Assembly (NCBI GenBank): GCA_002269645.1
Contig: NIVC01001494.1
Coordinates: 62,001-126,000, forward strand
Length of the DNA: 64,000 nt
Direction of reading: 5' to 3'
Origin: Macrostomum lignano
Lineage: Eukaryota
This document shows, piece after piece, positions 1 through 53,789 of this stretch. The number at the start of each line of letters is the position of its first letter. The first letter of the stretch is position 1. The translations under genes and the position numbers were made by a program. The notes under the pieces are model-generated. The model had not been told where the DNA came from. It saw only the letters and a list, made by a program, of their open reading frames with translations, and did no database searches.

Positions 1-2590
1 AAATTTTGAGTTGAAATCAGAAACAATTTCATTTTCTATTTTCATTTTTCATTTTTCCAAACTTCTTACTGCAAAAGATACAGAATGGGACTGGAAACGC
101 CACAGAATGTGGACTCGGGGGGGGGGGCTGCAGCGCAAGATTTTTCCCATCGCATTTAAGGCAATGAGCTGAAGTCAATGCAGGCACAGGAACACTCGAA
201 ATTTCCACACAGAGCTCAGTCAGCCAGTCTCGCTTGCACTGGCAGCCAAGTGATTGAAAACCATCTGGCCTATGCAATTGTTGACTGTGGCTGAGTTGCC
301 AGCAGAGGAGAAAGAGCGGGTGAAGAGACAGGGTGATTAAAGTACAATGCTGATCAACAATAATCCCGTCGCTACTCCTGACCAGACGCTGGAAGCTGGC
401 GGCCGAAGGCGACGACCTCGCACAGTGTGAGGTACTCGCCCTCGGTTCGCTGCGTCACCCTGAGGTTGCTGCCGACTTTATCGCAGGCGAAGTCTTTCAC
501 GCTGAATGTCTGGCCGGAGTTGTAGCTGGCGCACTGCTGGCCGTCCAGGGCGATGGTGAAGTTCGTCAGCCTGTTGGCGCAGCAGTCCTGCCGGTTGTAG
601 ATGCGCACCAGGCTAATGAAGGCCTTGGAGGCCGCGGCCGCCTGCCACCACTGTTTGGTGTTGGCCAAGTTGTCTGTGTGACCGCAGCTCCCGGCCGAGT
701 AGGTCTGTGCCGTGCCGCCGTCTGTGACGCGTTCGCAGATGCCGTTGTAGCTGGTGCTGGACTGGCTGCAGCCGCTCAGCTGCAGCTGCTCTGCAGAATG
801 TTTTTATGGAGGATATTTATATGAAGCCTAAATTCAGAGCCTCGAGGATACGGGATTGCAATATTAGTCCTCAGACTCAAAGTTATTTTCCAGGTAACTG
901 CATGGCCAAAAAAATTCTGTCATAATTTAGCATGTCAGCTTCCTTCAGACTAAGCTTTCTCACCTGACCGCCAGGCAAACAGCCGATCGCCGCTGCAGTC
1001 AGTCGCGGAGGCGGCCAATGCAGCCGCGCTGACTTCCTGCTCGCTGCCTAGCAGGGCGCAGCTGCCGTCGTCAACAAGGCGGATGCCGCGGCACAGGGGC
1101 TCCAGTGTGCATCTCCAGGCGCACGCGGAGAGCGCAGTTTGAATGTACACAATGTACACAAACACACACACACACACTCAGGCGTATTCACAGCAAGAGC
1201 TTCCTGCCGATGGCGCCATCGCCTGCGGCGATCGGTGCTGCAGGATGCGCTGCAGGATGCGCCTGAGTGTGTGTGTGTGTGTGTGTGTGTCTGTGTACAT
1301 TGTGTACATTTGGTCCTATATACCGGAAATTGCGTACATTTATGCGTACAATTATGTCTATGCGCTACATTGTGTGTAGTTCGTTGCCCTGCGTTTGTAA
1401 ATACAGTTTAGCCCGTGCACTGCATTGATGCCTACTTTTGTGTTAGGTACCAGCTTTTTATTAAATACACTGCACCAAAAGCAACTTTAATCGGTACATA
1501 CTGTGTTTTTGTAGAGGTGCCGGTATGCTTTTTAATACATACATGTATGTCTTTAGTGTAATTTGGTGTGCTTCTTCAACTTGGCTCGCGAATCTTGCAC
1601 TATGGCTCTCTAGTGGAAAGTACTCTTACTTGTGCTGGTTGCGGGTGATTGTAAGGCTTTCTGCTTGACTTCTTTAGTTTACTTGATGGTTAAATGAGGA
1701 GTGGGAGCTGACGCGCCTACCTCGGGGGAGGAATGCAGCCCTGCGGTCTGATGCAGCGCTTTCTGTTACCCCTCTCCGTCCGCACTGTACTTGGTCTCCG
1801 CTACAATCACCCCTTGGGGTTAAGAGTGGGCGGGTCCTTTGTACTCGACCCTGGGTTAAAAACTCACATTTGGAGGCTCTGGGGAGAGTTGCAGTGGAGT
1901 TCAACAAATTTCTGATAAGATCTCTTGCGGGGGCATGACACTCGTCTCGAAATAATAATAACCCGAACAAGTGCTGGATGCCCTTACTAGTTGGCGTTTG
2001 TTACCTCTACAATTGTGCACTATTTCTGTCAATATTTTCCCCTGCATTATGTCAATATGTGCTACAGCGTGTCATAATATGATACTTTACGCACTAATAT
2101 GTATCATAATTTTCCTGCATTATGCCTGCTTCTACCTCTACGATGTGTGTATTTTAGCCTATGCATCTACATAATTCGAATCTATAGTGTGTGCATATGC
2201 ACCTGCATTATACTTGTATCTACTGTGCGTATGTGTATTTCAACCTATGTTTTACAATATACTAGCATCTACAAGCGCCTACTACACTAATGAGTAGGTT
2301 CTGTGTATTATACCTACTATTTTGTCTATTTCACCTACTTTTCTGCCAAAATATCGATAAAATGCACCTACATTGTGTGTTTTTTGCTGCCCATATGCTT
2401 AATTCTATATGTCCGTACACCTATATGTTTCGTAATATGTATTATGCACCGATATTTACACCTACTGATGTGATTAATATGTGTTTTGCTTACTTTTTAT
2501 GTAAATATACGCAATTTCACCTACTATAAGTAGTTTTCACTAGCCTAATTTTGTGTTAATAGGTATTGTTGACTACAAATCGATGTACAC

Positions 2591-2755
2591 ACATATCGGG
2601 AGAGTGGTAGAGTGTACATATCGGTAGAGTGTACACTCGGGGCGCCTGCGGCTCGGTAGAGTGTACACTCGGGGTGCCTGCGGCTCGGTAGAGTGTACAC
2701 TCGGGGTGCCTGCGGCATGGGCGTCTGCTGCATGGGCGCCTGCGGCTCGGGAGGG
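2591..2755. repeat. 165-bp direct repeat, copy A
   Basis: Matches 5215-5379 with 2 mismatches; built from units containing the palindrome GAGTGTACACTC and GCCTGCGGC. Confidence 0.9.
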
Positions 2756-5214
2756 CATACATATCGGGAGGGTTGCCTGCATCATACATATCGGGGCGCA
2801 TGGACGGGGCTCGAGTGGTGTACTCTTTGTGTGAATGTATTCTTGTTGTGTAACTCTTGACCGTCCCTTCCCTCCAGGAGCACTGCAAGTAGACTAGTAT
2901 GGCTTGGTATTCGGAGTTGGCGTGTGTACGTAATATACTCTTTGTAATATTTACCTGACCTGGGTTTGCAAGTTCTAATAACATATAAATGACTACTGCT
3001 GACTAGTTGACGCATCTGGATGGTGTGATAAAAACTAGTAACGTACCGTGATTTCGAGAGAAATCCTAGCACAATACTGTTCTGTCCGGCATGTGGAAAA
3101 GTATTTGCCCCGCCTTCGCTTACTCATACTGCACACAGACAAAGCTTATCTCTATTAGCAATCTGTTCGTGGTGGTTTAGAAGGATACTGTCTTCCTGTA
3201 TATAGCTCTCTATCCCTTCATCACTCGTATTAACTTCATAAATGCTCGCTTGACCAATGGCTGGTACTGAACTAATAATTCATACGATACATAATGGTTA
3301 ATACTTTCTAACTCCGTACAGCTCACAAGTTTCTACTCTCTACCTTATCAGTAACATTAAAATAAAAAGGTAAAATTTGCTGGTTTTGTGCCTCGTTTGC
3401 TTACTTTTCTATTAAAATACTTGCGGTTTATAATTGAAAATGTCTGCTTTTTATTCAATTTTATGTGGTTTGAAGGTTTATTTTTGCTAAAATGCCTGGT
3501 TTCTTATAAAAATTTCTACTCTCGACAATGATTGTGTCAGCTATTTCATTAAAATAACCTACTTTTTGAATAAAACGTTGTATTTAAGCCCCTAGTTTTT
3601 TCAAAACATAATGGAAACCCTCACAACGCCCTTGGAACCTCCTCAAGCAGCTTACATAGAGCATGCAGACCCCGAAACCCCCTCTAGTGTGCCCTGATTT
3701 CAGCGGTCTGACGGTTAAGATCTGTATTTTTACACTATATTTTCCTTCATACAGCAATACAGGAGGGCTTGGAAGAGTGAGTCTGGCGGGAGAGGGGGCT
3801 TGTGGGGTGATGAGGATGCGTACACACAGTTTAGCCTGTTTTAGCCTACCTTTTGGGCTAATATACTTACTATTATTACTACCATTATACCTACTATGTA
3901 CATACTATTATACTACCCGCTATTAAATATGCTGCACTAAAACCAACTTTTGAAAATACATAGCGTGTTTTGGTCGATTCTCCCTCACGTCTCTGTCCCT
4001 ACACGTGCTCTGCCCGCTTTGGTCTCTGTTTGTGTACCTCTCTGTAACGTCTCTGTACGCTCAGACTGGTTTCTCCGTCCCCGCACGCGCCTCTACTAAA
4101 GTTTGCTGTTACCTACCCCTACACACTGCTCTCTGTCTCCCTCCGCGCACACCTCACTGCCCTTGCATGTAACTTGCATGCCTTGCATGCCCTGTCCTGC
4201 CCTCGCGTGGGTCCCTGCCTATACATAGCTACCGGACCCTACCTCTCTCTGTGCCTTGCTCGCAACTCTGTCCCAGGCCCCCCTTCATACTTCTCTGTCC
4301 CGGGCTGCAACTGGCTGACACGCGCCTCTCTGTTCCCCAGCCTGCGTGGCTGCCTACCCCTGCACACTGCTCTCTGTCCCCCTCCGCGCCTCTCTATCAT
4401 CCTATTCCTGCAGCTGACCGTGCCGTTCAGCTCTGTCCACGCACGGCTCCACCCCTGCCCGTGTCTCACTGTACCGCCCTGTGTGGCTCCCTTACCCAGC
4501 GCGTTTGCTTCCTATCTCCCTCCTGCTCCATATGTTTCTGTTCCCTCACACTACGCACGCGTGGCTGGCTCTCTGTCCATACACATCTCTGCTCCTCCAC
4601 TCTATCCTCGCGTGGCCCTTTGACGGTTCGCATGCCCCTGCATACCCTGCCTGCCTCTCTGTCCCCTGCAACTGGGGAGGGAGCTCTCTATCCTCTGTAT
4701 GGCTTTCTCTGTGGGGTGTGTGTGACTCACACTGCCTCTCTGTCCTAGCATGCGCCTCTCTGTCCACGCCGCGTGCTGCGACATGCCGGGGCTGCGCAGG
4801 GTGCCTCCACGCACTCTCTGTCCCAGCACCCCGTGTCTCTCTGTACCCCGCCTCATACTGCTACAGGGGGCCGCCTGTTATCTGTCCCCTGCTACAGGGG
4901 ATGGCGGCTCTCCACGCACTACCCCTCCTGCTACAGGGGCTGCTCTCTGTCCCCAGCTACAGGGCTGCTCTCTGTCCCCCGCATGGGGGTTGGTTGCTCA
5001 GTGTACAGGGCTGCGTCAGCATCGGGGTTAAAACTTCTCGCTCCCTATACCCCCAAACCGTGTAGTGGCCTAGTATGGGCGCGACCTGGGTTCGAGTTCG
5101 CTAGTTGAGATGTGGGTGAGAGAGGGGAAGAGGCTAGGTGGGGGCAGGGCGTGAGGTATAGGGTGCCTGCGGGGTACGTATCGTTGACTACATATCGGGA
5201 GAGTGGTAGAGTGT

Positions 5215-5379
5215 ACATATCGGGAGAGTGGTAGAGTGTACATATCGGTAGAGTGTACACTCGGGGTGCCTGCGGCTCGGTAGAGTGTACACTCGGGGTG
5301 CCTGCGGCTCGGTAGAGTGTACACTCGGGGTGCCTGCGGCATGGGCGCCTGCTGCATGGGCGCCTGCGGCTCGGGAGGG
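5215..5379. repeat. 165-bp direct repeat, copy B
   Basis: Matches 2591-2755; one extra 25-bp unit precedes it from 5190. Confidence 0.9.
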
Positions 5380-7020
5380 TGCGCTTGGGATCTGATTGAT
5401 TTGGGATCTGATTGATTTGGGATCTGATTGATTTATTGGGATCTAATATCGGTAGGTGCGCCTGCGGCATGGGCGCCTGATTGGCTCCACGCGCCTGCGG
5501 CATTGGCGCCTGGATGGCGCGCCTGGATGGCGCTTGGCGCCACGCGCCTGCGGCGCGCGCGCGCCGAGCGCCAGCCAATGAGAGGCGGGGTGGGTTGACA
5601 CCCACCCCACCTCCAAAACGCCCGGATCTACCGGCCCTTAGTAGTGGCGGTGGCCGGGTTTCTCGGCTCGAAAATCAGTCGCGAGCTGCACGGCTGCAGA
5701 GCCTCAGCGCCGCGGACTGCAAGCAGCAGACAGCTGCAGCAGAATACAGCGATCAGCGGCATCGACACCGTCATTGTTGAAGTCGGTTTGGCAGCCTAAA
5801 ATTACGAGTTGTATAGGGATGAGTCGTTCAGGTTGCGTCGGTTCGGGTCTACTAGGTGCAGATGATGCGAATTCCGTGAAATTTCATGCAAACATTATTG
5901 GAAATTGCTTCATTTTGGTACTCTTATGCTCAAGTCCAGAAGGTGAAGTATTTGGAAATTTGAGCTAAAGAAACTGAAAATGCTTCCTATATTGCCAATG
6001 CATTTTGCTGCGAAGTTTGTACGCTTTGCGAGTTCTGTTTTAGCTGTCCCTGCTAGAAAACTGCGGGCTTACCAGCATGCAGACTCGACTAGACCAGCAC
6101 TCGCTGAGCAGATGCCGAATATACAAAAATAGGCTGCTGTAATTAAAAGAAACTGCAGCTGCGGGGCGCAACTGCCAATTATTTGGCATTCACTGAAGCA
6201 CTGTGGGTGATTATATACTATCGTCTCTGCTACCTGTCTATTTCTGCAGGTGCCCACTTTTTTGTCGCTATTCCCGGACCCAATCAATAACAATCGGAGT
6301 GCGTGGATTTGGCAGGTCAGTTGGCAGGGAAAATTAGCAAAATTACCGACATCGCACGGCATAGGAGACCCGCCAGCCTCGGTTTTTGCCTGCCCCACTT
6401 GAGTGCTGCTGCTGCCTCCCACTAGTCCGCAGAGGCTCTCAAGACAATGCAGCCATTAGAGAAAATACACCGAGCCAAACATGACCGACAGAATCAATTA
6501 AGTGGCTATTGCTGCTGTTTGCGTCAATCAATTCTTTGTAAACAAACATTTCCAACTGTCTGGCTAACTTTTTATTAGAGGCAGAGGGGCTGTGTGCACC
6601 CTGGCGCACTTTTAGCGAAATTGTCATTCCGCTGACTCCCCTGAGCAGGCACACAAGCGCTCGGATGCGTGCGCACTGCGCAGTCATGCACACACAGGCA
6701 CACACTACTCACACAGGAGTGCACAGCGGCCCTCACTTAATTCACCGTTAGGCATGTAACCTTGTGCCAAGGGCGTTAATCACACTAACAGACCCAAGCC
6801 TGGGCCGCTGGCACACAAGAGCGCCGTGCTAGACAACTGGGCTACGGCCCCTGCTGTCGGCCTAAATTTCTAGAAAAGAGCTTGTAAAAACTTCACGCCT
6901 CAACCAGAGAGAGTGAGTGAGAGAGAGAGAGAGAGAGCGAGAGGCTGTCAAGGTCAAAGCCTTGTGGCAGTAGCCAGAGGTGAACTGGCTTGATGCAATG
7001 CGCAACCATATTAACTTCAG

Positions 7021-7311: not shown

Positions 7312-9714
7312 TCACAGCAGCCGTCCGAAGGCGATGACCTCGCACAGGGTGAGGAACTCATTACTGAAGCGCTGCGTGACCTTGAGAGTCGTGCCAACCT
7401 GCTCGCAAGGAAAGTCCTTGATGCTGAATGCCTGGGTGGAGTTGTAGCTGGCGCACTGCAGGCCGTCCACGGAGATCGCGAAGTTATTCAGTCTGGACTC
7501 CACATCGTCCTGCCGGTTGTAGATGCGCACCAGACTGACGAAGGCCCTGGAGGCCATGGAGGCCTGCCACCACTCGTTGCCCACTGTTGCCTGGGTATGG
7601 GTGCAGACGGCCCCGGCGTTGTGGTTTTGGTCCAGGCTTCCGTCAATGGCGTTGTTGCAGTTGCCTTCAAGTGTGCTTGACTCGCTACATCCTGACAGCT
7701 GCAGCTGCTCTGGAATGTTTTTGTTCGATTGAGCGAGTATTAACTACCTGAAGACTTCAATTTAGAACAGTCCTGCTCCTGCATAGAAATGTCAGGCGAT
7801 AATTTAGGGTTTAAGCTTTGAAAGCTCTAACATATGGACCCCACACTGGATTTTCTTAGAAATGAGCCGAAGAGCCGGTAAGGAACGAATGTTTGTCGCA
7901 ACGCCAGTGCCTTCAGCATGCTCTCGAGCAACACGGATTTTTCTCGACCGGATTTGTCTATGGCAAAAACCAATTCAGCGCTATGCGTTCTCTGCAGCGC
8001 TACGCCGTTTTGTCGCCTATTTTGACCAAATTCGCATCGAAAAACTCGCGACACTTCTTTCTATTCAGTCACCATGAGCTGGCCGGCCCCGGGGATCGAA
8101 TTCGAACTCTTTAATTATATTTACAGATTGTGACATCCTCCGTTGAACAAATCGACTCGCAGAACTTCAAGCGCCCTGTGGTGTTTCGTCTGGCAGTTCC
8201 CTTGCCAGCTTGCTGTTAACCATTAAGCTTTTTACTGATATACAATTTCCGTGTCTTGAGACTTATACTTAGACTTACAATGATTCTGCCTCTGTCAGCA
8301 TTGCTAATCTTGTTGCTTGTTATTCAACATTGCTAAGGTGTGGTGTGTTCTTATTGATTCTCTGGAGTCGTGGGGAATGAGGGGGTTCTTACTGATTTTT
8401 GTTTGTTTGATGTGACTTTGGATAAATAATCAGCGGTCATAAAAATGCAAACAATTGCCAGACAATGGTCAAAATAAACCGGTAGAACGGTGCAGCAATG
8501 CGACAAATATAAATTCCTTTCTGGCCTCTACGAGTTCGCATCTCGTTTCTAAGAAAATCGAGTCTAGCATCCTTCTGCTTCAGCTATCCGTGCTTTAACA
8601 CTTAAAGAAGAAGAGTCCGTGGAGCCCTGTTTGAGTGTGTGGGCTGTGTGTTAGTTTATTTGTTTACTTTGAGCTCAGAGGATCAGTCTATCCACATACG
8701 GTTGTTCTGTACAAAAACCTAATGACCTAATAATCTCATAACATACCTAATTTATCTTCGTAAAATTCATTGAATCGAATGAAGCTTCCCCGCACTGCAA
8801 CTTGCCAATCTTCCATTTCATTTCAAACACCCGGTCGCCCGTGCAGTCGGTCGCGCTGGCGGCACTCGCACTCGCGTTGACCTCCAGCTCGCTGCTCAGC
8901 AGGGCGCAGACGCCGCCGCTTCCGCCGTTATCAGCGAGGCGAATTCCGCGGCAGCGAGCCTCCACAGCGCATCTCATGGAACAGCGGGACAGTGCGTCCC
9001 AAAACCTGCCGTCGGAGCAGGAGGCGGCCGGATTTCTGGGCAGAAAGGTCGATACTGAGCTGCGGTGCTGCGCCGCATCAGCCTCAAAAACTGGCAGAAG
9101 CAGCAGCAGCGGCAGCAGCAGGCAGTAGCTGACCGCGGCCAGCGCCTTCACCAGCTCGGCTCGCGTTTGGGCAACCTGAAATGTCAGCAATATGTGGAGT
9201 TGCTATGGGTAAGCTGAGACCCTCAGTCACAGTGTGCATTGGTGAGCTGAGGCACTCAGTCACAGTGTGCATGGGTGAGCTGAGACCCTCAGTCACAGTG
9301 TGCATTGGTGAGCTATGACCCTCAGTCACAGTGTGCATGAAGGAGCTGAGACCCTCAGTCACAGTGTGCATGGGTGAGCTGAGGCACTCAGTCACAGTGT
9401 GCATGGGTGAGCTGAGGCACTCAGTCACAGTGTGCATGGGTGAGCTGAGACCGTCAGTCACAGTGTGCATGGGTGAGCTGAGACCCTCAGTCACAGTGTG
9501 CATGGGTGAGCTGAGACCCTCAGTCACAGTGTGCATGGGTGAGCTGAGGCTCTCAGTCACAGTGTGCATGGGTGAGCTGAGACCCTCAGTCACAGTGTTT
9601 CAATCGATAAGCATAATTAGTCCAACCAAGAAAATTGTAGCATCAGACCCGAATCGAAAATCTCCGACTCACCTGCGTTTTCCGACCAGAAACAGAGAGG
9701 TTTGCACCTGCCAT
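7312..9714 (-). CDS. PAN/Apple-like + F-type lectin, copy 2 (about 269 aa)
   Basis: Exons 9714-9673 (MAGANLSVSGRKTQ, donor GTGAGT), 9175-8806 (hydrophobic leader, CSMRCAVEARCRG...CALL, GC donor G|GCAAGT) and 7709-7312 (NAIDG, HTQ...RQDDVESR, LTLCEV). Frame is continuous across all three. Confidence 0.85.
9205..9597. repeat. 33-bp minisatellite in lectin intron 1
   Basis: Unit GGTGAGCTGAGACCCTCAGTCACAGTGTGCATG, about 12 copies; same family at 16476-16737, 20660-20769 and 23531-23640. Confidence 0.95.
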
Positions 9715-10384
9715 GTTGGAAAGCCTTGTCTTGCTGCGCTGCCTTTCTGCTTTGCAAAATGCTTTAAATTTGTCTCGCTTTTTTACAGAGTTCGGAAGGT
9801 TTCTTTGCTAAATATGTTTTCTGCTCATCTTCATTCAAGTGTCTTCTCAGCCTCCTCCTTAACACACCATTGTTTAAGTCTGCTGCATGGTTGCTTAGGC
9901 GCACAGAGCATGCCAACTAACCAGCAGCTCCCATTCAGAGCCCCGGCCTGACTGCGGAGCCGTAGCGCCGTGAGTCAGTCAACAGAAAGGCAACAATTCA
10001 AAGAGCTTCTCCCTGTCAACTCTGCCTGCTGTGCTGCCACAGTCGAGAGTGGCGCCAACAGCCCAAGAAGCGAAGCGAGCGGTTTCACATTGTCTGTGAT
10101 CGTTGCCCCGGCAACGGGAGGAAGAATTGAGGAGGGGACGAAAATGCTCTCCAGCACACCTGCATGAATGCAGAGCAGCTGGGAAGCTGGCCGGTGTTTC
10201 GCTCTGATCCTCATTGCGAGGCCCAAGAGGAGGAGAATTGACGTGTTTGGCATCCCAGTCACTTTTTGCTGTTCCCAGCCACAGAATCTGCAGGAAGGGA
10301 ACGAAAGATCTCCTATGACTGCCTGTGTGTGGGTTTAGCATTCAAATGCTGCATGAACTTTAAGATTCGTGATTTTAATGTTAG

Positions 10385-10560
10385 ATTCTCTGATGATTCT
10401 CTGATGATTTTCTGATGACTCTCTGATGATTCTTTGATGATTCTTTTATGATTCTCTGATGATTCTTTGATGATTCTTTTATGATTCTCTGATGATTCTC
10501 TGATGATGTTCTGATGACTCTCTGATGATTCTTTGATGATTCTCTGATGATTCTCTGATA
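10385..10560. repeat. 11-bp repeat (CTGATGATTCT)
   Basis: Direct reading; paralogous longer array at 17360-17835. Confidence 0.9.
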
Positions 10561-10894
10561 ATCGTGAAAAAATTTTATCGTGAATAAATCGTGAAATAAT
10601 TAAAATAATTAAAATTATTATCGTGAAATAATTTTATCGTGACTAAAATGTGTACATTTATCATTTTATAAGCTTTCCACTCGGGAAATGTTTGCATGGT
10701 CAGCCTGGCATTCCAGCTGCATGAGAGCACTGCTGAGGACCGAAAGTTGCAAGTCAAATAAAATGAAAAGCCGACAAAATTTTACAGAAACTGCGAGAGG
10801 ACTTTTAAGACTTATTTGATATAAATATGCTTTTGTTTATTTCAGACAGCAGGTAATTCGCTGTTGTATCGTTCAGAAAGAGATTGAAAACTTT

Positions 10895-12135: not shown

Positions 12136-15100
12136 TCACAGCAGCCGTCCGAACGCGATGACCTCGCACAGGGTGAGGAACTCATTACTGAAGCGCTGCG
12201 TGACCTTGAGAGTCGTGCCAACCTGCTCGCAAGGAAAGTCCTCGATGCTGAATGCCTGGGTGGAGTTGTAGCTGGCGCACTGCAGGCCGTCCACTGAGAT
12301 CGCGAAGTTCTTTAGTCTTGTCTCGCAGCAGTCCTGCCGGTTGTAGATGCGCACCAGACTGACGAAGGCCCTGGAGGTCATGGAGGCCTGCCACCACTCG
12401 TTGGCCACTGTTGCCCGGTCAGTATGGGTGCAGACGGCTCCAGGATTGTGGTTTTGGTCCACGCTTCCGTCAATGGCATTGTTGCAGTTTCCTTCAAGTG
12501 TGCTTGACTCGCTACATCCTGACAGCTGCAGCTGCTCTGGAATGTTTTATTTAAAATAATGTTTATGCTCATAGCTTAAAGCTTGCTCTCGTCACCCTTG
12601 TTTGCCTTGAGTAAACTGCTTCACTCTAATCTTGACTTGTAGAGTATAATTATTCATAAAATGCTACTGTAAGTAGACTAATGCAAACATGCGCAGCAAA
12701 ACTTAAACTGTGAATCAGGTTACTATTTATAACGAAGCTATGAAGCATGTTACTATTTATAATGGGAAGATGTATCATGTTACTACATATGATGAAAGAT
12801 GAGTCGGCTTACCATTTATAACAAAAAGAGGAATCATGTTAATACGTAAAAAACTTGCCTATAAATACAAGCCAAAATCCGAGCTAAAATCTCAGACTCG
12901 GAGCAGCCTCCAAAGATCTTGAGTTTGCCGAAGCAGTTAAGCGAGGCTACATCTCCGAGGGAAATAAATACCATTCGGTAAGTCTTTGTTCGAGTCTTCG
13001 TTATTTGATTATTGAGAGCTGCGTTATTGCCGGCCGTTACTGATCAGTTGAGTTCACTAAGTCTATTAAGTTTGAGGCCTTCCTTTTCCTAAAGGATTGG
13101 ATAGGATCTGCGGACCGATTCCGATACCCTTAGAGGATTATTGATTGATTGATTTTGGTACCCTAGAGTAATCGATACGGGCACACGACTCCGATTCCGT
13201 TATTTCTAGAAGAAGACACCCTTTCTGGAGGACCTCGTTATTGTTTTAGAGTTGACTTTGTTATTAGGGCGCATCTCTGATCTCAGCACTCGAGGAATAT
13301 ATTGACTTCTGCACTCGAGGAATATATTGACTTCTGCACTCGAGGAATATATTGACTTCTGCACGCGAGGAATATATTGACTTCTGCACTCGAGGAATAT
13401 ATTGACTTCTGCACTCGAGGAATATATTGACTTCTGCACGCGAGGAATATATTGACTTCTGCACGCGAGGAATATATTGACTTCTGCACGCGAGGAATAT
13501 ATTGACTTCTGCACTCGAGGAATATATTGACTTCTGCACTCGAGGAATATATTGACTTCTGCACTCGAGGAATATATTGACTTCTGCACGCGAGGAATAT
13601 ATTGATTTCTGCACTCGAGGAATATATTGACTTCTGCACGCGAGGAATATATTGACTTCTGCACGCGAGGAATATATTGACTTCTGCACGCGAGGAATAT
13701 ATTGACTTCTGCACTCGAGGAATATATTGACTTCTGCACGCGAGGAATATATTGACTTCTGCACTCGAGGAATATATTGACTTCTGCACGCGAGGAATAT
13801 ATTGATTTCTGCACGCGAGGAATATATTGACTTCTGCACGCGAGGAATATATTGACTTCTGCACTCGTGGAATATATTGACTTCTGCACGCGAGAAATAT
13901 ATTGATTTCTGCACGCGAGGAATATATTGACTTCTGCACTCGAGGAATATATTGACTTCTGCACGCGAGGAATATATTGACTTCTGCACTCGAGGAATAT
14001 ATTGACTTCTGCACGCGAGGAATATATTGACTTCTGCACGCGAGGAATATATTGACTTCTGCACGCGAGGAATATATTGACTTCTGCACGCGAGGAATAT
14101 ATTGACTTCTGCACTCGAGGAATATATTGACTTCTGCACGCGAGGAATATATTGATTTCTGCACGCGAGGAATATATTGATTTCTGCACGCGAGGAATAT
14201 ATTGACTTCTGCACGCGAGGAATATATTGACTTCTGCACGCGAGGAATATATTGACTTCTGCACTCGAGGAATATATTGATTTCTGCACGCGAGGAATAT
14301 ATTGACTTCTGCACTCGAGGAATATATTGACTTCTGCACGCGAGGAATATATTGACTTCTGCACGCGAGGAATATATTGACTTCTGCACGCGAGGAATAT
14401 ATTGACTTCTGCACGCGAGGAATATATTGACTTCTGCACGCGAGGAATATATTGACTTCTGCACGCGAGGAATATATTGACTTCTGCACGCGAGGAATAT
14501 ATTGACTTCTGCACTCGAGGAATATATTGACTTCTGCACTCGAGGAATATATTGACTTCTGCACTCGAGGAATATATTGACTTCTGCACGCGAGGAATAT
14601 ATTGACTTCTGCACGCGAGGAATATATTGACTTCTGCACGCGAGGAATATATTGACTTCTGCACGCGAGGAATATATTGACTTCTGCACGCGAGGAATAT
14701 ATTGACTTCTGCACGCGAGGAATATATTGACTTCTGCACGCGAGGAATATATTGACTTCTGCACGCGAGGAATACTTTGTCGTCGACGGATTGAATTGTT
14801 ACGCTCTTACATTCGGCCGATTTATAGAATTCAAGATAATACTCCGGAGGAAGAATATTCGAAGAAAGGAGCTCGGAGAACCTGCCCGACAAAGAAGAGG
14901 AGCCCGCATCAGTAAGTGATCACTGAATTCTGTTCCCAGGCTTAACATCTGGAAGTGGGAGTTCGTGAGTTTAGACACTAGACTTAATTCTCTCTTTCCC
15001 TCTCTCTCTAGTGTGCTAAAGCGAACTCTTCAGACTTTTAAAGAACTGAACATTGCCACAACTCACCAAACAGTTTCTCTCTAGTCGGTAAGTAACAGGT

Positions 15101-16853
15101 TATGATCGCAATTTCATTAATAAATATCTTCATCAATTGCGCACCCATGGTAATTTAGGCTTACATTCGGCCTAATGGCTTAAGGAGTGCTCGGGGCTCA
15201 GCATAAATGCATGCTGGCTTGCCTTCTCGCTAGCTGGCATCTCAGCCTCTGCAAAATAACTGGATCAGCTTCCTGCAACTTGCTGCCAGCCAAATGGAAC
15301 TGAAGCCCCTGACTGCAACTTGCCAGCCAAACCGAACTGAAGCCCCTGACTGCAACTTGCCAGCCAAACCGAACTGAAGCCCCTGACTGCAACTTGTCAG
15401 CCAAACCGAACTGAAGCCCCTGACTGCAACTTGCCAGCCAAATGGAACTGAAGCCCCTGACTGCAACTTGCTGCCAGCCAAATGGAACTGAAGCCCCTGA
15501 CTGCAACTTGCTGCCAGCCAAATGGAAATGAAGCCCCTGACTGCAACTTGCTGCCAGCCAAATGGAACTGAAGCCCCTGACTGCCACTTGCCAGCCAAAT
15601 GGAACTGAAGCCCCTGAATGCAACCTGCCAGCCGAATGGAACTGAAGCTTCCCTGACTGCAACTTGTTGCCAGCCTAATGGAACTGAAGCCCCTGACTGC
15701 AACTTGCTGCCAGCCAAATGGAACTGAAGCCCCTGACTGCAACTTGCCAGCCAAATGGAACTGAAGCCCCTGACTGCAACTTGCCAGCCAAATGGAACTG
15801 AAGCCCCGCACTGCAACTTGCCAGCCAAATGGAACTGAAGCCCCGCACTGCAACTTGCCAGCCAAATGGAACTGAAGCCCCGCACTGCAACTTGCCAGCC
15901 AAATGGAACTGAAGCCCCGCACTGCAACTTGCCAGCCAAATGGAACTGAAGCCCCGCACTGCAACTTGCCAGCCAAATGGAACTGAAGCCCCGCACTGCA
16001 ACTTGCCAGCCAAATGGAACTGAAGCCCCGCACTGCAACTTGCCAGCCAAATGGAACTGAAGCCCCGCACTGCAACTTACCAGGCTTCCATGCCAACACC
16101 CGGTCGCCCGTGCAGTCGGTCGCGCTGGCGGCAGTCGCACTCGCGTTGACCTCCAGCTCGCTGCTCAGCAGGGCGCAGACGCCGCCGCTTCCGCCGTTAT
16201 CAGCGAGGCGAACACCGCGGCAGCGAGCCTCCAAAGCGCATCTCATGGCGCAGCTGCTCAGTGCGTCGCGCAGCCGGTCATCAGAGCAGGAGGCGGCCGG
16301 ATTTCTGGGCAAGAAGGTCAGTCTCGAGCCGCAGTGCTGCGCCGCATCAGCCTCAAAAACTGGCAGAAGCAGCAGCAGCGGCAGCAGCAGACAGTAGCTG
16401 ACCGAGGCCAGCGCCTTCGCCAGCTCGGCTCCCGTTTGGGCAACCTGAAATATCAGCAAAATGTAGAGTTGCTATGGGTGAGCTGAGGCACTCAGTCACA
16501 GTGTGCATGGGTGAGCTGAGACCCTCAGTCACAGTGTGCATGGGTGAGCTGAGACCCTCAGTCACAGTGTGTGCATGGGTGAGCTGAGGCACTCAGTCAC
16601 AGTGTGAATGGGTGAGCTGAGGCACTCAGTCACAGTGTGCATGGGTGAGCTGAGGCACTCAGTCACAGTGTGAATGGGTGAGCTGAGACCCTCAGTCACA
16701 GTGTGCATGGGTGAGCTGAGACCCTCAGTTACAGTGTTCGAACCGATTAGCATAATTATTCTAGCTAAGAAAATTGTAGCATTAGACCCGAATTGAAAAT
16801 CTCAGACTCACCTGCGTTTTCCGACTAAAAATAGAGAGATTTTCACCTGCCAT
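12136..16853 (-). CDS. PAN/Apple-like + F-type lectin, copy 3 (about 268 aa)
   Basis: Exons 16853-16812 (MAGENLSIFSRKTQ), 16444-16081 (donor G|GTAAGT) and 12536-12136 (HTD...RQDCCETR); frame continuous. Confidence 0.88.
12638..15032. mobile_element. Solo-LTR-like insertion (2,395 bp) carrying a 25-bp array
   Basis: Ends TGTAGAG...CTCTTCA with a 4-bp TSD GACT (12634-12637 / 15033-15036). The empty site (CTTGACTTTTA) is present in copy 4 at about 20094-20104. TATAAA at 12860 and AATAAA at 12963. Confidence 0.8.
13286..14774. repeat. 25-bp minisatellite, about 59 copies
   Basis: Unit GCAC(T/G)CGAGGAATATATTGACTTCT with two interspersed main variants. Confidence 0.97.
15270..16080. repeat. 37-40-bp minisatellite starting at the lectin exon-2 donor
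   Basis: Minus-strand unit GGCAAGTTGCAGTGCGGGGCTTCAGTTCCATTTGGCT, about 21 copies; 3 copies at 20145-20261 in copy 4. Confidence 0.95.
16476..16737. repeat. 33-bp minisatellite (lectin copy 3 intron 1)
   Basis: Same unit as 9205-9597. Confidence 0.9.
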
Positions 16854-17359: not shown

Positions 17360-17835
17360 CTCTGACTCTCTGATGATTCTATGATGATTCTCTGGTGATT
17401 CTCTGATTATTCTCTGATGACTCTTTGATGATTCTCTGATGATTCTCTGGTGATTCTCTGATTATTCTCTGATGACTCTCTGATGATTCTCTGATGATTC
17501 TCTGGTGATTCTCTGGTGATTCTCTGATGACTCTTTGATGATTCTCTGATGATTCTCTGGTGATTCTCTGGTGATTCTCTGATTATTCTCTGGTGATTCT
17601 CTGGTGATTCTCTGATGACTCTTTGATGATTCTCTGATGATTCTCTGGTGATTCTCTGGTGATTCTCTGATTATTCTCTGATGACTCTTTGATGATTCTC
17701 TGATGATTCTCTGGTGATTCTCTGATGATTATCTGATGATTCTCTGATGATTCTCTGATGATTCTCTAATGATTCTCTGATGATTCTCTGATGATTATCT
17801 GATGATTCTCTGATGATTCTCTGATGATTCTCTAA
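17360..17835. repeat. 11-bp repeat (CTGATGATTCT)
   Basis: Direct reading. Confidence 0.9.
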
Positions 17836-18409
17836 TAAAATGTACTAGTGGTTGCTCATATACACAACTTGCGTGGCAAAAAATCGTTAAAATATGACAC
17901 ATCTCCCATCACTAAATTTTATAAGTATTAATTCTCAACAATCCTTCTGCGGTCAATATAATTTTTAAAAGCAATTGCTGCTCTTCCTGTCTACTAGAAA
18001 TACCTTGCAGATTCAGCTTGGCTATACTTTGAAGTTGGAATGAATTTATCTGTATTCCGCTCAGAAAAGGTTGGTATGCTCAGCCCAGACATTCCAGCTA
18101 TATATGAGCACACTACCGAGGACTGAAGGCTTCTGCGTCAAGACGTGGCAGAAAAGCGGTTGGTTTGGAGCATCGGTGTAATTTATTAAGTCGTTGTTCA
18201 ATTTCTAAATATTCTCAGGCTGTTGAGTTTTTAATCGCAATAAAAAAATGATAAAATAATAAATTAATAATAATAAAATAATAAAATGACAAGAGGGATT
18301 TTACAGAAATTGAGATTTTTGGCTTGTTTGGTCTAAATATGCTTTATTTCAGACAACAGTTTATTAGCAGTCGTATTATTTGAAAACAGATTGGATACTT
18401 TCATTTGGA

Positions 18410-19603: not shown

Positions 19604-20625
19604 TCACAGCAGCCGTCCGAAGGCGATGACTTCGCACATGGTGAGGAACTCATTACTGAAGCGCTGCGTGACCTTGAGGGTCGTGCCAACCTGCTCGCAA
19701 GGAAAGTCCTTGATGCTGAATGCCTGGGCGGAGTTGTAGCTGGCGCACTGCAGGCCGTCCACGGAGATCGCGAAGTTATTCAGTCTGCTCTCGCTACCGT
19801 CTTGCCGGTTGTAGATGCGCACCAGACTGACGAAGGCCCTGGAGGCCATAGAGGCCTGCCACCACTCGTTGCCCACTGTTGCCTGGGTATGGCTGCAGAC
19901 GGCTCCAGAGTCGTGGTTTTGGTCCAGGCTTCCGTCAATGGCATTGTTGCAGTTTCCATTATAGGTGCTTGACTCGCTACATCCTGACAGCTGCAGCTGC
20001 TCTGGAATGTTTCAGTAAAATATGATTATGCTTATAGCTCGTAGCCAGCTTTATGCGCCTTTATTTGCCTTGAATGAACTGCTTCACTGTAATCTTGACT
20101 TTTAGAGAACTGAACATTGCCACAACAAGTCACTGTTGACTGCAACTTGCCAGCCAAATGGAACTGAAGCCCCTGACTGCAACTTGCCAGCCAAATGGAA
20201 CTGAAGCCCCTGACTGCAACTTGCCAGCCAAATGGAACTGAAGCCCCTGACTGCAACTTGCCAGGCTTCCATGCCAACACCCGGTCGCCCGTGCAGTCAG
20301 TCGCGCTGGCGGCAGTCGCACTCGCGTTGACCTCCAGCTCGCTGCTCAGCAGAGCGCAGACGCCGCCGCTTCCGCCGTTATCAGCGAGGCGAACACCGCG
20401 GCAGCGAGCCTCCAATGCGCATCTCATGGCGCAGCTGCTCAGTGCGTCACGCAGCCGGTCATCAGAGCAGGAGGCGGCCGGATTTCTGGGCAAGAAGGTG
20501 ACTCTCGAGCCGCAGTGCTGCGCCGCATCAGCCTCAAAAACTGGCAGAAGCAGCAGCAGCGTCAGCAGCAGGCAGTAGCTGACCGCGGCCAGCGCCTTCA
20601 CCAGCTCGGCTCCCGTTTGGGCAAC
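19604..20625 (-). CDS. PAN/Apple-like + F-type lectin, copy 4 (exon 1 not found; possibly a pseudogene)
   Basis: Exons 20625-20262 (GC donor G|GCAAGT) and 20001-19604 (HTQ...RQDGSESR), open frame. No homologue of the 42-nt ATG exon is seen beyond the gypsy insertion. Confidence 0.7.
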
Positions 20626-20769: not shown

Positions 20770-23530
20770 TGTTATAATCGATGAAGTATGCGGTCTTTAT
20801 TGTTTGTTAAATGTTGTTAGGGACGTGCCTGCATCCTATCTTGCAAAGCCATTGTGAGAGCTCTTGTGACACCAGCTGAGGTCCATTATCAGAAACTATG
20901 GTGTCAGGCACGCCTTCCTGTGCGAAGTCGCTTGATAGTCTCAGCAGCCGTCGTCTTTTGCATCAGGTGCACCTCCGGCCATTTAGAAAAGGCATCCATC
21001 ATCACCAGTGCGTGCGTGCCGTTTTTGAGCGGTCCTGCGAAGTCTATGTGGACTCGATTCTACCGGTCGATTTCGTCTGGACAAGACTCTCAATGAGGTC
21101 TTGTACAGTCCTTCCCTCTGCAGCAACCTTCGCATGCTCTGGTGTGGTGCTCTTTATCTTTGCCGATGTTTATCCACCATACCGACTTTCTGGCCAAGGA
21201 TTTCATCGCTTCCTTTCCCATGTGTCCATTGTGCAACTCTATGATAACTTTTTTTCTTAATCACTGAGGAATCACCAGTCTGTTTCCTTTGTAGATAAGA
21301 CCATCCTCCAATACTAGATCATTCCAAATCTTGGCATATGGTTGTAGAGGACATCGAACAGTTTGCTTCCATCCGTGAAGAATCTGCTTCTAAAGCTTTT
21401 TCATAACGAGGTCGTTCTTAGAAGCTGTTCGAATTTCCTTTTTAGAGACTGGCGGATCGTTGGTGCAGTCCTGAATCGCTTCTATTTCGAAGTGTTCTCT
21501 CTCAGATCCAGATGAGGCACAACGCGATAGTGCGTCGGGAACGGGAATTTCACTCGTCACTTTGTGCACAATCTCGCAACTGTAGGCCATCATTGTGACC
21601 GCCCAACGCTGAAGCCTAGCTGCTGTTACAGAAGAGAGCGTCTTGTTCGGATGGAAAATGTAGTGCAATGGTTTATTGTCCGTCACTAGTTTAAATCTTC
21701 TCCCGTAGAGGAGGAACTTTTGCAATCTTTTATCTGCCCAGACCACAGCCAGCGCCTCTCGCTCGATTTGAGCGTAGTTCTGCTCGGCCTTTGTGAGAGT
21801 CTTCGACACGTACAGAACAGGCCTACCGTTTTGCTTGATCACCGCTCCAATTCCGTGGGGAGATGCATCAGTCGTCAGCGTGACCTCTTCTTTCGGGTTG
21901 AACGGCACCAGAACGGAATCTCCCGTCAATGCTTCTTTCAGCTTCTGGAAGGCTTCGTCCTGCTCTTGGCCCCGAGACTATGCGATGTTCGATTGCAGAA
22001 GTCGGCTCAGTGGGGCTCTGATGTCTGAGAGGTCCTTAATGAAACGTCCATAGAACTTGAGCATTCCCAAAAAGCTTCTTAGCTCATTCGAATTTTTTGG
22101 TTTTTGGAATCCTTTTATCGCTCGAACCTTCTGTGGATCAGGTCAAATTCCGTGGGCACTAACAATGAGGCCGAGGATCTTTACTTTTTCTTTGCAGTGA
22201 GAGCATTTGCTTTCATTATGCTGCAGTCCGTTCTGATGAAGCCTTGACTTTACTGATTGAACTGCTGCATCATAGTCAGCTCGTGATGCCGTGTGCACGA
22301 TAACATCGTCTTGATAACTCTGGAAACCTTCAAGCCCACGTATCGAAGTTCATGGACAGATGACTGCCGTTGATATTCAGACTGACAATCAACGTTCTCC
22401 TGTCTGGAAATCTAGCAGCAAATATATATCGATCGGAGCTACTATGCTCGGAGTCTCGAGGAGCTTTACTGCTGTCGTTGATCAGTCTAACCTGATTTGC
22501 TCGCCTTTTGTGACGGCACACTGCCTCTAGATGACCTGACTTGTGACAAACTCTGCAGGCTTCATTTCGAAATCTGCAGTCTGCTTCTGATGACCTTTCT
22601 TTCCACAGCATCTGCAAAAGCTCTAACCTTTTCCAGCATTCCGCGAATCCTGCTGCCCATTCTCGATCTTACTTCCGGCCATGCGCCTGTCCCGTTTAGC
22701 CAACTTGTAAATTGAGCCTTGTTCGGGTTGCCAGTTCTTCTGTGACCTCTTAACTGCCTCGTGAGCTGTCGCGATTTCGACTGCTTTTTGAAGCGAAAGG
22801 TCGGATAACTTTTCTGTAAGCATCTTCCTCGGTGCCTCTTGGTTAGCAATCCCAAATACAAATTGGTCACGAAGTCGGCTTTCCAGCTCTGAAGAACCCG
22901 TTGGTTGGCCATCTTGCTTCGGCGTTTCTAAACTGAAGTCGCAGTTCTCAGCTGCCGCTCGAAGCTTCCGCACGTACGTCGGAATGTCGTCATCGCCTTG
23001 GCGCAGATTTGAAAAATCGAATCGGGCTGCAATCGGGAGTTTCTTGGGCTGAAACTGTCCCAGGATGATCTCCTTCAGCTCGCTTAGTGACTTGTCAGCT
23101 GGCTTCAGGGGAACTATTGCGTCGGCTACCATGTTGAACGCTTCAATCTCCACCATTGCCAGCAGTGCACTTTTCAGTCTGCCGCCCTCCTACGGAATTT
23201 GTTGCCAGGATGCGACTGCCTCAGACTGCAGAAGCCATAGATTGGGTCGTCACCGCGCTTTAGTGGTTCGATGAATTCTCTTGAGCTCGTCGCCATTTTG
23301 TTATAATCGATGGAGGATGCGGTCTTTATTGTTTGTTAAATGTTGTTGAGCGTTTATTTAGCTCCTACAGCTCTTGGCTTCTTTATCATATTTTTTTATA
23401 TAAAATAATTCATTCGAGCCATGAGCTCAAAACCTCCGTAGCTGTACTGTCTACGTAGGATTAAACATAAACAAATATTCGCAGTCAGCGCTGATTCTAA
23501 GTTCATTTTAATAGTGCAAAAGCCACAACA
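20770..23530 (-). mobile_element. Degenerate, internally deleted Ty3/gypsy (Mag-like) LTR retrotransposon
   Basis: 5' LTR 23299-23530 (TGTT...AACA) and truncated 3' LTR 20770-20818. TSD GAGGC/GAGAC with 1 mismatch. PBS TGGCGACGAG at 23295-23286. Gag 23156-22623, Zn knuckle CRVCHKSGHLEAVC, protease remnant DTWA, RT YQDD, RNase H (TDASPHGIGAV...YAQIEREALA), integrase (HNGH...CEGC, HIDFAGP, VSDNGPQ), with stops and frameshifts. Confidence 0.93.
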
Positions 23531-33726: not shown

Positions 33727-36700
33727 ATGTCGAAGGACGGCAAAAAGCCTTACAATGCGGAGGCGGAGCGCGCCCGCATCGCCCGGCTGTTCAAGCAGCT
33801 GGACAAGGACGGCGACGGCCGCATCAGCGCCTCGGAGCTCAGCGCCGCCCTGAAGCAGCAGTACGGCCAGGAGGCCAAGCGACTGGAGGCGGCCGAACGC
33901 GTCATCCAGGCCAGCGACTCGAACGCGGACGCGGGCCTCGATATGGACGAATTCGTCCGCTACGTCACAGATCAGAACAGGCGGCTCCGCCTGGCCTTCA
34001 AGGAGCTGGACAAGAACAAGGACGACCGCATCGATGCCGAGGAGATCCAGGCGGCCATGCTGGAGCTCGGCATCAAGCTCAACAAAGCAGAGGCTGAGCA
34101 GCTGCTCAACAAACTCGACAAGGACGGCTCGCTGAGCATTAATTATGAGGTGAGTGGCTGAGGCCTGGCGCTGGCCCATTTCGGGCCCTGGATGAGTCGC
34201 ATGGAGAGGCAGCGGGCCCTGGATGAGCCGCATGGAGACGCAGCGGGCCCTGGATGAGCCGGATGGAAAGGCAGCGGGCCCTGGATGAGCCGCATGGAGA
34301 CGCAGCGGGCCCTGGATGAGCCGCATGGAGAGGCAGCGGGCCCTGGATGAGCCGCATGGAGAGGCAGCGGGCCCTGGATGAGCCGCATGGAGAGGCAGCG
34401 GGCTCTGGATGAGCCGCATTGAGCTTCATAATAATTCCTGTATTTCTGCGTTGTACGCACTCCGCCATCCATCTTGTTTGCTCAGGTCGCATTGATACAT
34501 CGGTTGCCCCCAGTGACCCGGGACTACGGAAAGGGTAAATAGTGTGTTATGGTGTGAGCTAATACCCAGATTATTATTAATAACGTATAAATATCGGCTG
34601 CTGGCATTGTATGCCGCTCCGCTTTAGAGATGTTGGACCTGCCACTTGCTCACACGCTGCATGTCGTGGCGTGGCGGAGCCACTGATTGCCCGCTTGTCA
34701 CTGTTGTGTCTTCGCCGCATTTTTATTGTTAGGCCTTCATCATAGCTGTTGGCTTCCAGCAGCCCCCTCGTATTTTGCTTAATGTACTTTTATTTTATAC
34801 TTTTCCTTGGATGTAAATTCATTTTGTTGTACCGGTACCAACCCGTTAATTTGGTTCTGTTTCGAATTTGGGATCACTGCTCCCAAGTCCATTGATCGCA
34901 CTATGATCATAATGGGACAATTCTCCCAACTCCTTCAATCACACCCTAATCATAATGGGATAATTCTCCCAACTCCCTCAATCACACCCTAATCATAATG
35001 GGACAATTCTCCCAATTCCCTCAATCGCACCCTTATCATAATGGGATGATTCTCTTTATTCCCCCAATCGCACCCTAATCATAATGGGATGATTCTCCCA
35101 ACTCCCTCAATCACACCTTAATCATGATGGGATGATTCTCCCTACTCCCTCAATCGCACCCTAATCATAATGGGATAATTATCCCAACTCCCTCAATCGC
35201 ACCCTAATCATAATGGGATGATTCTCCCAACTCCCTCAATTGCACCCTAATCATAGTGGGATAATTCTCCCAACTCCCTCAATCGCACTCTAATCATAAT
35301 GGGATAATTCTCCCAACTCCCTCAATCGCACTCTAATCATAATGGGATAATTCTCCCAACTCCCTCAATCGAACCCTAATCATAATGGGATAATTCTCCC
35401 AACTCCCTCAATCGCACCCAAACCATAATGGGATAATTCTCCCAACTCGCTCAATCGCACCCTAACCATAATGGGATAATTCTCCCAACTCCCTCAATCG
35501 CACCCTAACCATAATGGGATAATTCTCCCAACTCCCTCAATCGCACCCTAACCATAATGGGATAATTCTCCCAACTCCCTCAATCGCACCCTAATCATAA
35601 TGGGATAGTTCTCGCATCGCGCAGGAGTGGCGCGACTTCCTGCTGCTGACGGGCCGGCACTCGGTAGATGAGATCTTCATGCTGATGCGCCGAGCCTCCA
35701 GCTTCGACATCGGCGAGAGCTTCGTGATCCCCGACGATTACACACCGGAGGAGCGGCAGTCCGGCGTGGCCTGGAAGACGCTCGTCTCCGGCGGCCTGGC
35801 CGGCGCCGTTTCCCGCAGCGCCACGGCGCCGCTGGACCGCCTGAAGGTGGCCTGGCAGGCCAGCGCCGGCTCCAAGGACAGCCACGGCGCCAAGGCCTCG
35901 ATGTGGCGCGGCATCGCCGGCATGGTGACAGAGGGCGGCGTGGCCAGTCTGTGGCGCGGCAACGGCGTCAACTGCATCAAGATCGCCCCGGAGTCCGCCA
36001 TCAAGTTCCTGGCCTACGAGACCTACAAGGGCCTGATTGTGGGCGAATCAAAGCGGCCGGTGAGGCTTACCTGGATCCTGCTTTCTCCTTTTTAGGATAT
36101 TTGTAATTACTTATCTAGAGGGCTGTCTTTTGAGTAGATCTCTATATGCGGGAATTGGCAGATCCCCATTTTAAAAGAATCGGCAGATCCCCATTTGGGA
36201 GAATCGGCAGATCCCCATTTGGGAGAATCGGCAGATCCCCATTTGGGAGAATCGGTAGATCCCCATTTGGGAGAATCGGCAGATCCCCATTTGGGAGAAT
36301 CGGCAGATCCCCATTTGGGAGAATCGGCAGATCCCCATTTGGGAGAATCGGTAGATCCCCATTTGGGAGAATCGGTAGATCCCCATTTGGGAGAATCGGT
36401 AGATCCCCATTTGGGAGAATCGGTAGATCCCCATTTGGGAGAATCGGTAGATCCCCATTTGGGAGAATCGGCAGATCCCCATTTGGGAGAATCGGTAGAT
36501 CCCCATTTGGGAGAATCGGTAGATCCCCATTTGGGAGAATCGGCAGATCCCCATTTGGGAGAATCGGCAGATCCCCATTTGGGAGAATCGGCAGATCCCC
36601 ATTTTAAAAGAATCGGCAGATCCCCATTTGGGAGAATCGGCAGATCCCCATTTGGGAGAATCGGCAGATCCCCATTTGGGAGAATCGGTAGATCCCCATT

Positions 36701-37561: not shown

Positions 37562-37639
37562 GCACCTAGAGGAAGCTGGCTGGCTGTCACTGCAAATCGA
37601 CATAAAATCCCTTCATTAAAGATCCCATCAGGATATCCG

Positions 37640-53275: not shown

Positions 53276-53789
53276 AAACGCAGATGCTTCAGAGGTTCTC
53301 ACGGTTCTGTACTCCTCTTCATCACTTCATTCATTACCGAAAAAGTTCCGAACTGAATTTCTTATCCAGAATCTTCTCAGCTGTCGAGGGTCTCAGGGGC
53401 CCCTCATCAGTTGGAGTTCAGAGCCGACTGAGAAGGCTCTGAAGGTGATACGGCTGGCTTGAGTATCCATCAGGAACCGGAAATTCCTTATTCTGACAAG
53501 CCTTAAGAGTCTGGAACGGATTAAGGATATAGCGGATGAGTCTGATTTCCGCCCGCTGCATCCTGAGTCAGTTTTGGTAGGATTGGAACTTTTATTGCCG
53601 TCCATTGCGCAGTTGTCCTGCGGGCACCAAATGTCCAATTTGATGATGGATGAGCTTGACAATGCGATGGAGGAAGGCTCGGGTGTTAAACTTCACATAA
53701 TCCCTGGCTTGCGGTATCCGGGGCCGAAACCTCGCTTTAAAAAACACATTAAGGCGGTTGGTAGATCTGTGTTTTCCTTTTTCGAACAC

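Follow-up and report, generated by a model that had tools for sequence, protein, structure and literature searches.

A non-coding 4.5-kb insertion without target-site duplication in a lectin exon of Macrostomum lignano argues for a non-autonomous mobile element

We examined a 64-kb stretch of the genome of the flatworm Macrostomum lignano (contig NIVC01001494.1 of assembly GCA_002269645.1, positions 62,001 to 126,000 of the forward strand; 64,000 nucleotides, hereafter the window, in whose own numbering all positions are given). Exon 1 of one copy in an array of lectin genes was found to be interrupted by an insert of 4,486 bp, at 1144-5629, which is without detectable coding capacity. Our data argue for the insert being a genuine non-autonomous mobile element that moves by an asymmetric, non-DDE mechanism. 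As to the mechanism itself, we tentatively favor, with less than even confidence, a single-strand HUH rolling-circle-like process as in Helitron2 and Helentron elements; membership of the Helitron2/Helentron families is not supported.

An earlier note on this DNA had claimed that removal of 1144-5629 restores an in-frame lectin open reading frame (ORF) of 247 amino acids, that the insertion lies cleanly at T|TT with no target-site duplication (TSD), and that it is probably recent. We found that joining position 5630 to 1143 gives AAG GGC CGG T|TT CAA ACT in frame and that the rejoined ORF, with exons summing to 744 nt (247 codons and a stop), is stop-free with its splice sites intact. When the rejoined protein was compared with three paralogues there were zero gaps at the join, where PRNPATATTKGRFQTALS aligned with PRNPAASCSDGRFWDALS. 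Because the closest paralogue (copy 2) has AGG TTT at the equivalent position, the host TTT codon is taken to be ancestral and the boundaries of the element to be exact. At the two junctions, TTTGAA|TGTACAC and GGATCT|ACCGGC, there is neither a direct repeat nor any base ambiguity; zero host bases are duplicated and zero are lost, so that there is neither a TSD nor a target deletion. Read on the minus strand, the insertion site is T|T (flanks GGT| and |TTC), and on the plus strand it is A|A; the predicted empty-site sequence is GGGCCGGTTTCAAACTGCG. Thus both the restored frame and the clean insertion stood up to closer analysis. The claim of recency is also supported: since the disrupted copy retains an unbroken host ORF, intact splice sites on both sides of its intron and the fucose-binding RxDxxxxR motif, the insertion is probably recent.

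The M. lignano genome is neopolyploid, repeat-rich and difficult to assemble (PMC10733133), which raises the possibility of an assembly artefact in the form of a chimeric join or a misplaced repeat. However, a misjoin would not resume at the next exon base after 4,486 bp with the frame kept. Because the sequence does resume at the next base of the same exon, we regard the insertion as real and an artefact as extremely unlikely.

The reconstructed lectin was also used as a protein query, and its sole matches were FTP-domain proteins of M. lignano. Two UniRef FTP-domain proteins from this species are 99-100% identical to exons of paralogues in the window. No annotated intact allele of the disrupted gene was present among the protein database matches, the best of which were paralogues at 59% identity, and an exact look-up of neighboring M. 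lignano gene products found no other assembly of the locus on record.

On the minus strand, a possible 5' splice site, CG|GTAGAT, arises at the right junction (5632/5631), and a candidate frame-keeping acceptor, AG|A, lies at 1113/1112, 31 nt into the 3' part of the split exon. Splicing from one to the other would excise the whole insert and 33 host nt (FQTALSACAWR), and the disrupted gene might yield a shortened protein through this cryptic in-frame splice. An introner or true intron was considered for the insert itself and rejected, as its 3' boundary lacks AG.

We next describe the ends of the element, where the earlier note had reported a large foldback at one end, a 9-bp GC stem-loop 21 nt from the other, no pair of terminal inverted repeats (TIRs), no TG..CA ends of long terminal repeats (LTRs), no poly(A) tail and no canonical Helitron TC..CTRR ends. 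All of these observations could be reproduced. On the plus strand the element starts with TG and finishes with ATCT, and on the minus strand it starts with AG and finishes with TACA; these terminal letters show no LTR ends, poly(A) or TC..CTRR. Between the two 300-nt ends, inverted matches reach at most 8 nt. This is at chance level (shuffled controls usually gave 7-9 nt), and the 8-nt match sits in the foldback loop, away from the tip.

The foldback at the left end has arms of the form TGTACACAATGTACAC-(AC)n-TCAGGCG and CGCCTGAG-(GT)n-GTGTACATTGTGTACA, and as DNA it folds at -69 and -64 kcal/mol (z = -11). Its symmetry, together with a perfect 9-mer tandem (AATGTACAC)x2, extends past the element to take in two host nucleotides, the AA at 1142-1143, the 9-mer arrays lying at 1142-1161 and 1292-1310 by Tandem Repeats Finder (TRF). 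This overlap is a coincidence, with a chance of 1/16, or else a microhomology of 2 nt. We rejected the foldback as a separate miniature inverted-repeat transposable element (MITE), since the host AA would then have to belong to the MITE and the reading frame would be broken. A metagenome contig, JAAUYG010069886.1 (locus L018, 1-233), holds an unrelated perfect palindrome of ~230 bp whose arms contain the 16-mer TGTACACAATGTACAC ~10 nt from each tip; there is no other similarity, and we treat the shared 16-mer as a coincidence.

At the right end, the perfect 9-bp core of the GC hairpin (5587-5595/5600-5608) stands 21 nt from the element end and can be extended to 14 bp. Pairing is complete on the minus strand by way of one G.T pair, which on the plus strand is a C/A mismatch, and the fold scores z = -4.1 on the plus strand and -6.1 on the minus strand. 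The element is thus asymmetric in design: the foldback uses the very last nucleotide of one end, and the GC hairpin lies 16-21 nt from the other tip.

These ends could also be read as those of a non-autonomous retroposon, copied from a minus-strand transcript by target-primed reverse transcription (TPRT) with the enzyme of a long interspersed nuclear element (LINE) reading the 3' stem-loop and tandem repeat, in the 'stringent' manner of CR1/L2-like elements. The minus-strand 3' end is a stem-loop finishing in the tandem 9-mer (GTGTACATT)x2, and the final TT of this 9-mer is also the host TT, a 2-nt microhomology such as TPRT priming gives. On that strand the lone imperfect pair of the right-end hairpin is G.U-compatible, every motif array in the element is strand-asymmetric, and the CCAAT and GC boxes at the other end could serve as an internal promoter. 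CR1/L2-type LINE-dependent retroposons likewise show a 3' stem-loop with a short tandem repeat, target microhomology and a short or absent TSD. However, the element has no poly(A), no remnant of a reverse transcriptase (RT) or endonuclease in any frame and no evidence of 5' truncation, and its insertion is exactly blunt. Its 4.5 kb of non-coding DNA is long for a LINE-dependent element, the lack of both TSD and target loss is unusual for TPRT, and the AA/TT coincidence is expected by chance at 1/16; its putative tail, two 9-mers with neither poly(A) nor TSD, is seen in one copy. We consider retroposition unlikely.

The two ends have motifs in common. The loop of the foldback holds the bipartite motif GATGGCGC..CGCCTGCGGCG, which occurs again at 5513-5555 in the same orientation (direct matches of 8-11 nt between the ends), an arrangement that would not be used by a DDE transposase, as such an enzyme needs inverted ends. 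Against an expectation of 0.72, the window contains the motif GCCTGCGGC 12 times, each time within the insert and always on the plus strand. Two repeat blocks (R1 and R2) carry four copies apiece, the foldback loop carries one, and the other three are close to the right end. Motifs of this kind, which resemble protein-binding sites, stand in direct orientation at both ends and in R1 and R2. Subterminal arrays repeat both terminal hexamers, TGTACA and GGATCT. TGTACA is found 16 times in the 4.5-kb insert versus 20 times in the remaining 59.5 kb, and all five occurrences of GGATCT fall in the last 245 nt of the element.

The interior of the element is largely repetitive. Each 32-mer in R1 holds GTGTACAC and GCCTGCGGC, and the cores of the two blocks (2591-2755 and 5215-5379) are 98.8% identical over 165 nt, in agreement with the internal direct repeat that the earlier note had listed. 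R1 and R2 were tried as the LTRs of a nested element and rejected, having no TG..CA and no flanking TSD. A weak match between the 'head' segment and a second stretch, found by a sensitive blastn chain and alignment, is collinear with R1 and R2 and may reflect an old internal duplication. All eight copies of CTCTCTGTCC lie in the C/T-rich region on the plus strand, with none elsewhere in the window. The window has C/T-rich tandem repeats with a skew like that of insert positions 4000-5000 at 44974-46746 as well, where there is neither sequence similarity to the insert nor CTCTCTGTCC. The CCAAT and GC boxes already noted near the right end were found as promoter-like CCAAT/ATTGG and GC boxes across 5480-5591.

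A further possibility is that end-joining at a double-strand break once captured 4.5 kb of genomic or extrachromosomal DNA rich in repeats, with no transposon involved. M. lignano integrates injected DNA at random and efficiently without a transposase (PMC5730564), the microhomology at the junctions is 0-2 nt, the minisatellite and simple-repeat content resembles that of the intergenic DNA of the window, and one copy only has been seen. However, every target base was kept, which is rare for end-joining, one breakpoint falls exactly at the boundary of the 167-nt palindrome, and the same bipartite motif stands at both ends, which would not be expected of a random fragment. We find such a capture rather unlikely. 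It is because a random fragment is unlikely to end at a palindrome boundary with the same motif set at both ends that we take the insert to be a mobile element.

We detected no coding capacity in the insert. Pfam found no domain in any of the six frames of the insert, and a search of its concatenated six-frame ORFs of at least 55 aa against 5.8 billion proteins gave no match. The concatenate omitted four low-complexity ORFs over the foldback, and the search was aimed also at spurious gene calls in other copies of the element. Rfam (E<=1) returned for the insert only (CA)n/(GT)n hairpin look-alikes of microRNA families, far below threshold, and thus no hammerhead, other ribozyme or rRNA; ARAGORN found no tRNA in it. 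A look-alike of tRNA A and B boxes at ~5050-5100 was dropped, as ARAGORN was negative, and an origin from a vector or plasmid was rejected, as there was no plasmid match.

We then compared the element with the known classes of transposon. DDE cut-and-paste transposons and MITEs have TIRs and a TSD, both of which are absent here. LTR retrotransposons and terminal-repeat retrotransposons in miniature have terminal TG..CA repeats and a 4-6-bp TSD, whereas R1 and R2 are non-terminal, lack a CA end and are not flanked by a TSD. Neither terminal sequence recurs near the opposite end, and the sole long repeat, R1/R2, is internal. DIRS, Ngaro and PAT elements have inverted terminal repeats (ITRs) with an internal complementary region (ICR) or split direct repeats (A1...B1A2B2), neither of which was found. 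Cryptons have short direct repeats or a shared core at their termini and a tyrosine recombinase (YR) gene, whereas the junctions here share nothing and there is no YR domain.

The earlier note had put forward HUH and YR elements as the candidates for insertion without a TSD. A non-autonomous YR element, Crypton-, DIRS- or Ngaro-like, would insert by site-specific recombination of a circular intermediate, and this agrees with the absence of both TSD and TIR; direct-orientation end motifs are compatible with a recombinase acting at a circle junction. However, there is no ITR with an ICR and there are no split direct repeats, there is no core common to the two junctions, nor one that either shares with the inferred circle junction, and no RT or YR remnant is present. 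The YR half of the proposal is thus disfavored, and we hold it to be very unlikely. HUH fits best mechanistically, although the terminal repeats expected of its families, treated below, were not found. Since the marks of DDE, LTR and poly(A) elements, the DIRS ITR and ICR, the Ngaro split repeats and the Crypton core are all absent, an asymmetric mechanism remains.

If the element moves in an HUH-like manner, a trans-acting enzyme would move it, and a strand-specific single-strand (HUH/rolling-circle-like) cut-and-join would take place between two adjacent T residues, as in Helitron2/Helentron elements and their non-coding HINE derivatives. We infer this kind of cut-and-join because target bases were neither gained nor lost, and the HUH-like process fits because the unmodified target, the hairpins at both ends and the direct-orientation motifs occur in combination. 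The element would then presumably be one of multiple copies, with an enzyme and an orientation that we can only presume from this one; all that we describe, from the boundaries to the motif layout, comes from a single copy.

Helitron2 and the Helentrons with their HINE/DINE-1 derivatives are the described eukaryotic groups with two terminal hairpins; they insert between T residues, leave the target unchanged and often have central tandem repeats (PMC3627910, PMC4067079). Like Helitron2 (Bao & Jurka 2013, PMC3627910), which has non-coding derivatives, the element has no TSD and has hairpins at both ends. The 5' hairpin of Helitron2 is made of terminal nucleotides (0-2 nt from the end), and in plus orientation the foldback here starts at 1144; its 3' hairpin lies in the last few tens of nt, and here it lies at 5582-5613, 16 nt from 5629; the first base is T, as here in plus orientation. 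Helentron HINE/DINE-1 elements (Thomas et al. 2014, PMC4067079) are also non-coding, and HINEs go into TT and leave the target unmodified (PMC4067079), as the element does at T|T on the minus strand. They have a 5-10-bp palindrome 8-35 nt from the 3' end, compared with a 9-bp stem at 21 nt here in plus orientation, so that the geometry of the GC hairpin is like that of Helitron-type 3' hairpins (PMC3627910, PMC4067079). Central microsatellites and tandem repeats fill much of a HINE, and the element resembles HINE/DINE-1 in this respect too (PMC4067079).

Several observations weigh against this reading. The 8-15-bp asymmetric terminal inverted repeat (ATIR) that Helitron2 has upstream of its 3' hairpin and the 12-15-bp subterminal inverted repeats (subTIRs) of HINEs are both absent: no such pairing (8-15 bp) of the 5' end with the region upstream of the 3' hairpin was found. 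The cues to orientation conflict, as the hairpin geometry and the 5' T imply plus whereas the T|T target, and thus the HINE-like TT, exists on the minus strand only. In the orientation that the hairpins imply, the target reads A|A in this one insertion, whereas that of Helitron2 is T-rich (after a T run), and the host exon is GC-rich rather than T-rich. HINEs have at least two T on each side, whereas here one side has a single T, and 4.5 kb is long for a HINE. In size, the 167-nt foldback with its microsatellite arms greatly exceeds the known 5' hairpins of Helitron2 or Helentron. Mobility as a family is unproven from the single copy seen, and no evidence for RepHel genes was seen in M. lignano. 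Because the ATIR or subTIR is absent, the orientation cues conflict and the foldback is oversized, we do not file the element as Helitron2 or Helentron. Canonical Helitrons (Helitron1) have 5'-TC and 3'-CTRR termini, absent here, and insert between host A and T, whereas the site here is T|T on the minus strand, or A|A on the plus strand.

Subterminal hairpins in place of TIRs, a strand-specific layout and insertion without a TSD are also the marks of prokaryotic HUH insertion sequences (IS200/IS605 and IS91). The element resembles them in these three respects, whereas a conserved target tetranucleotide is not definable from one copy. These are bacterial families and are not known from animals. 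It is improbable, in our view, that the element stands for an undescribed group of animal transposons that lack TSD and TIRs and combine a long microsatellite-armed foldback at one terminus with a short subterminal hairpin at the other and binding motifs in direct orientation at both ends. Instead of a classical RepHel, such a group would be moved by some other enzyme, perhaps another HUH nuclease or one that processes hairpins. The rest of our confidence goes to mechanisms outside those listed here.

Other copies of the element were sought in several ways. In the window, blastn returned self matches only, with no second copy, and no autonomous Rep/helicase partner with the same termini was found there. 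A first metagenome scan for copies found nothing. A second one, with 16-mers, gave >120 matches; BLAST of the element to the fetched loci gave microsatellite matches only, and three loci that were inspected (L018, L040 and L048) are unrelated to the element. A scan of viral contigs likewise found nothing. Published repeat annotations of M. lignano threw out unclassified elements (PMC5730564), and it is plausible that the element is undescribed mainly since the repeats of this species are uncurated.

Table 1. Positions in the window of the element, its features and the lectin exons
Feature	Position	Strand	Details
Inserted element	1144-5629		4,486 bp, non-coding; within exon 1 of one lectin copy
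Terminal foldback, 167 nt	1144-1308, by symmetry 1142-1310		inverted repeat with 39-nt arms, 95%
Bipartite motif GATGGCGC..CGCCTGCGGCG	1209-1230	+	foldback loop; GCCTGCGGC at 1221
'Head' segment	1397-1515	+	weak likeness to 3820-3977, ~75% over 57 nt
Repeat block R1	2563-2755	+	25-, 32- and 15-bp tandem units
C/T-rich region, degenerate CTCTCTGTCC repeats	3980-5000	+	GC skew -0.30, AT skew -0.41
Repeat block R2	5178-5379	+	second copy of the R1 block, one 25-bp unit more
Three perfect 16-bp repeats TTGGGATCTGATTGAT	5385-5434	+	TRF 100% match; each echoes terminal GGATCT
GC-rich array of GCGCCTGCGGCATGGGCGCCTG-type motifs	5450-5581	+	ATTGG/CCAAT boxes at 5480, 5502, 5575
Subterminal GC hairpin	5582-5613		14-bp stem (5582-5595/5600-5613), 4-nt loop; 16 nt from element end
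Disrupted lectin exon 1, 5' part (exon 1a)	5630-5774	-	ATG 5772-5774; tblastn 100%
Disrupted lectin exon 1, 3' part (exon 1b)	964-1143	-	GT donor at 963-962
Disrupted lectin intron	791-963	-	GT..AG
Disrupted lectin exon 2 (F5/8-type-C / FTP domain)	372-790	-	stop codon included
Exon 2 copies of the lectin array	375-794, 7315-7713, 12139-12537, 19607-20002	-	

The first 20.6 kb of the window hold a minus-strand tandem array of at least four genes, each with an N-terminal exon that is rich in Cys and an F5/8-type-C / F-type-lectin exon; these PAN-like and F-type lectin genes span 372-20532. Relative to this assembly, the UniRef models P0001 and P0003 mix exons of different array copies, and they appear to be chimeric or from another haplotype. 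Copy 3 has an intron (12644-15273) ~2.6 kb longer than that of copy 4, owing mostly to a minisatellite of 1.5 kb (13278-14774, period 25/50 bp), which gives rise to long spurious ORFs in each of the three minus-strand frames. The whole window is exceptionally rich in minisatellite arrays (9205-9598, 10384-10562, 17363-17838, 36134-36962, 37620-38812, 48947-49823, 53789-54805 and others), several of them within gene-like regions, which fits the 15% of simple and tandem repeats reported for M. lignano. Beyond the lectin array, the window holds genes for Aha1, EF-hand/mitochondrial-carrier, C2-domain and ammonium-transporter proteins and a fragment of an LTR retrotransposon (21393-23189, minus strand). 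In this fragment Pfam recognizes an RT RNase H domain (E = 2.5e-28), and among the ORFs upstream there is a CCHC-like gag segment.

As it stands, the element is a single unclassified insertion by which one gene of a redundant lectin array is knocked out or altered; it is nearest in behavior to the derivatives of Helitron2/Helentron, yet it lacks the terminal repeats that define them. The transposons of M. lignano are largely uncurated. If other copies confirm its termini, the element would be a clean case of a recently active TSD-less element, with a reconstructable empty site, in a regeneration model. It would then offer a handle on the enzyme that moves such elements in flatworms, and would show the spread of tandem repeats within mobile elements.

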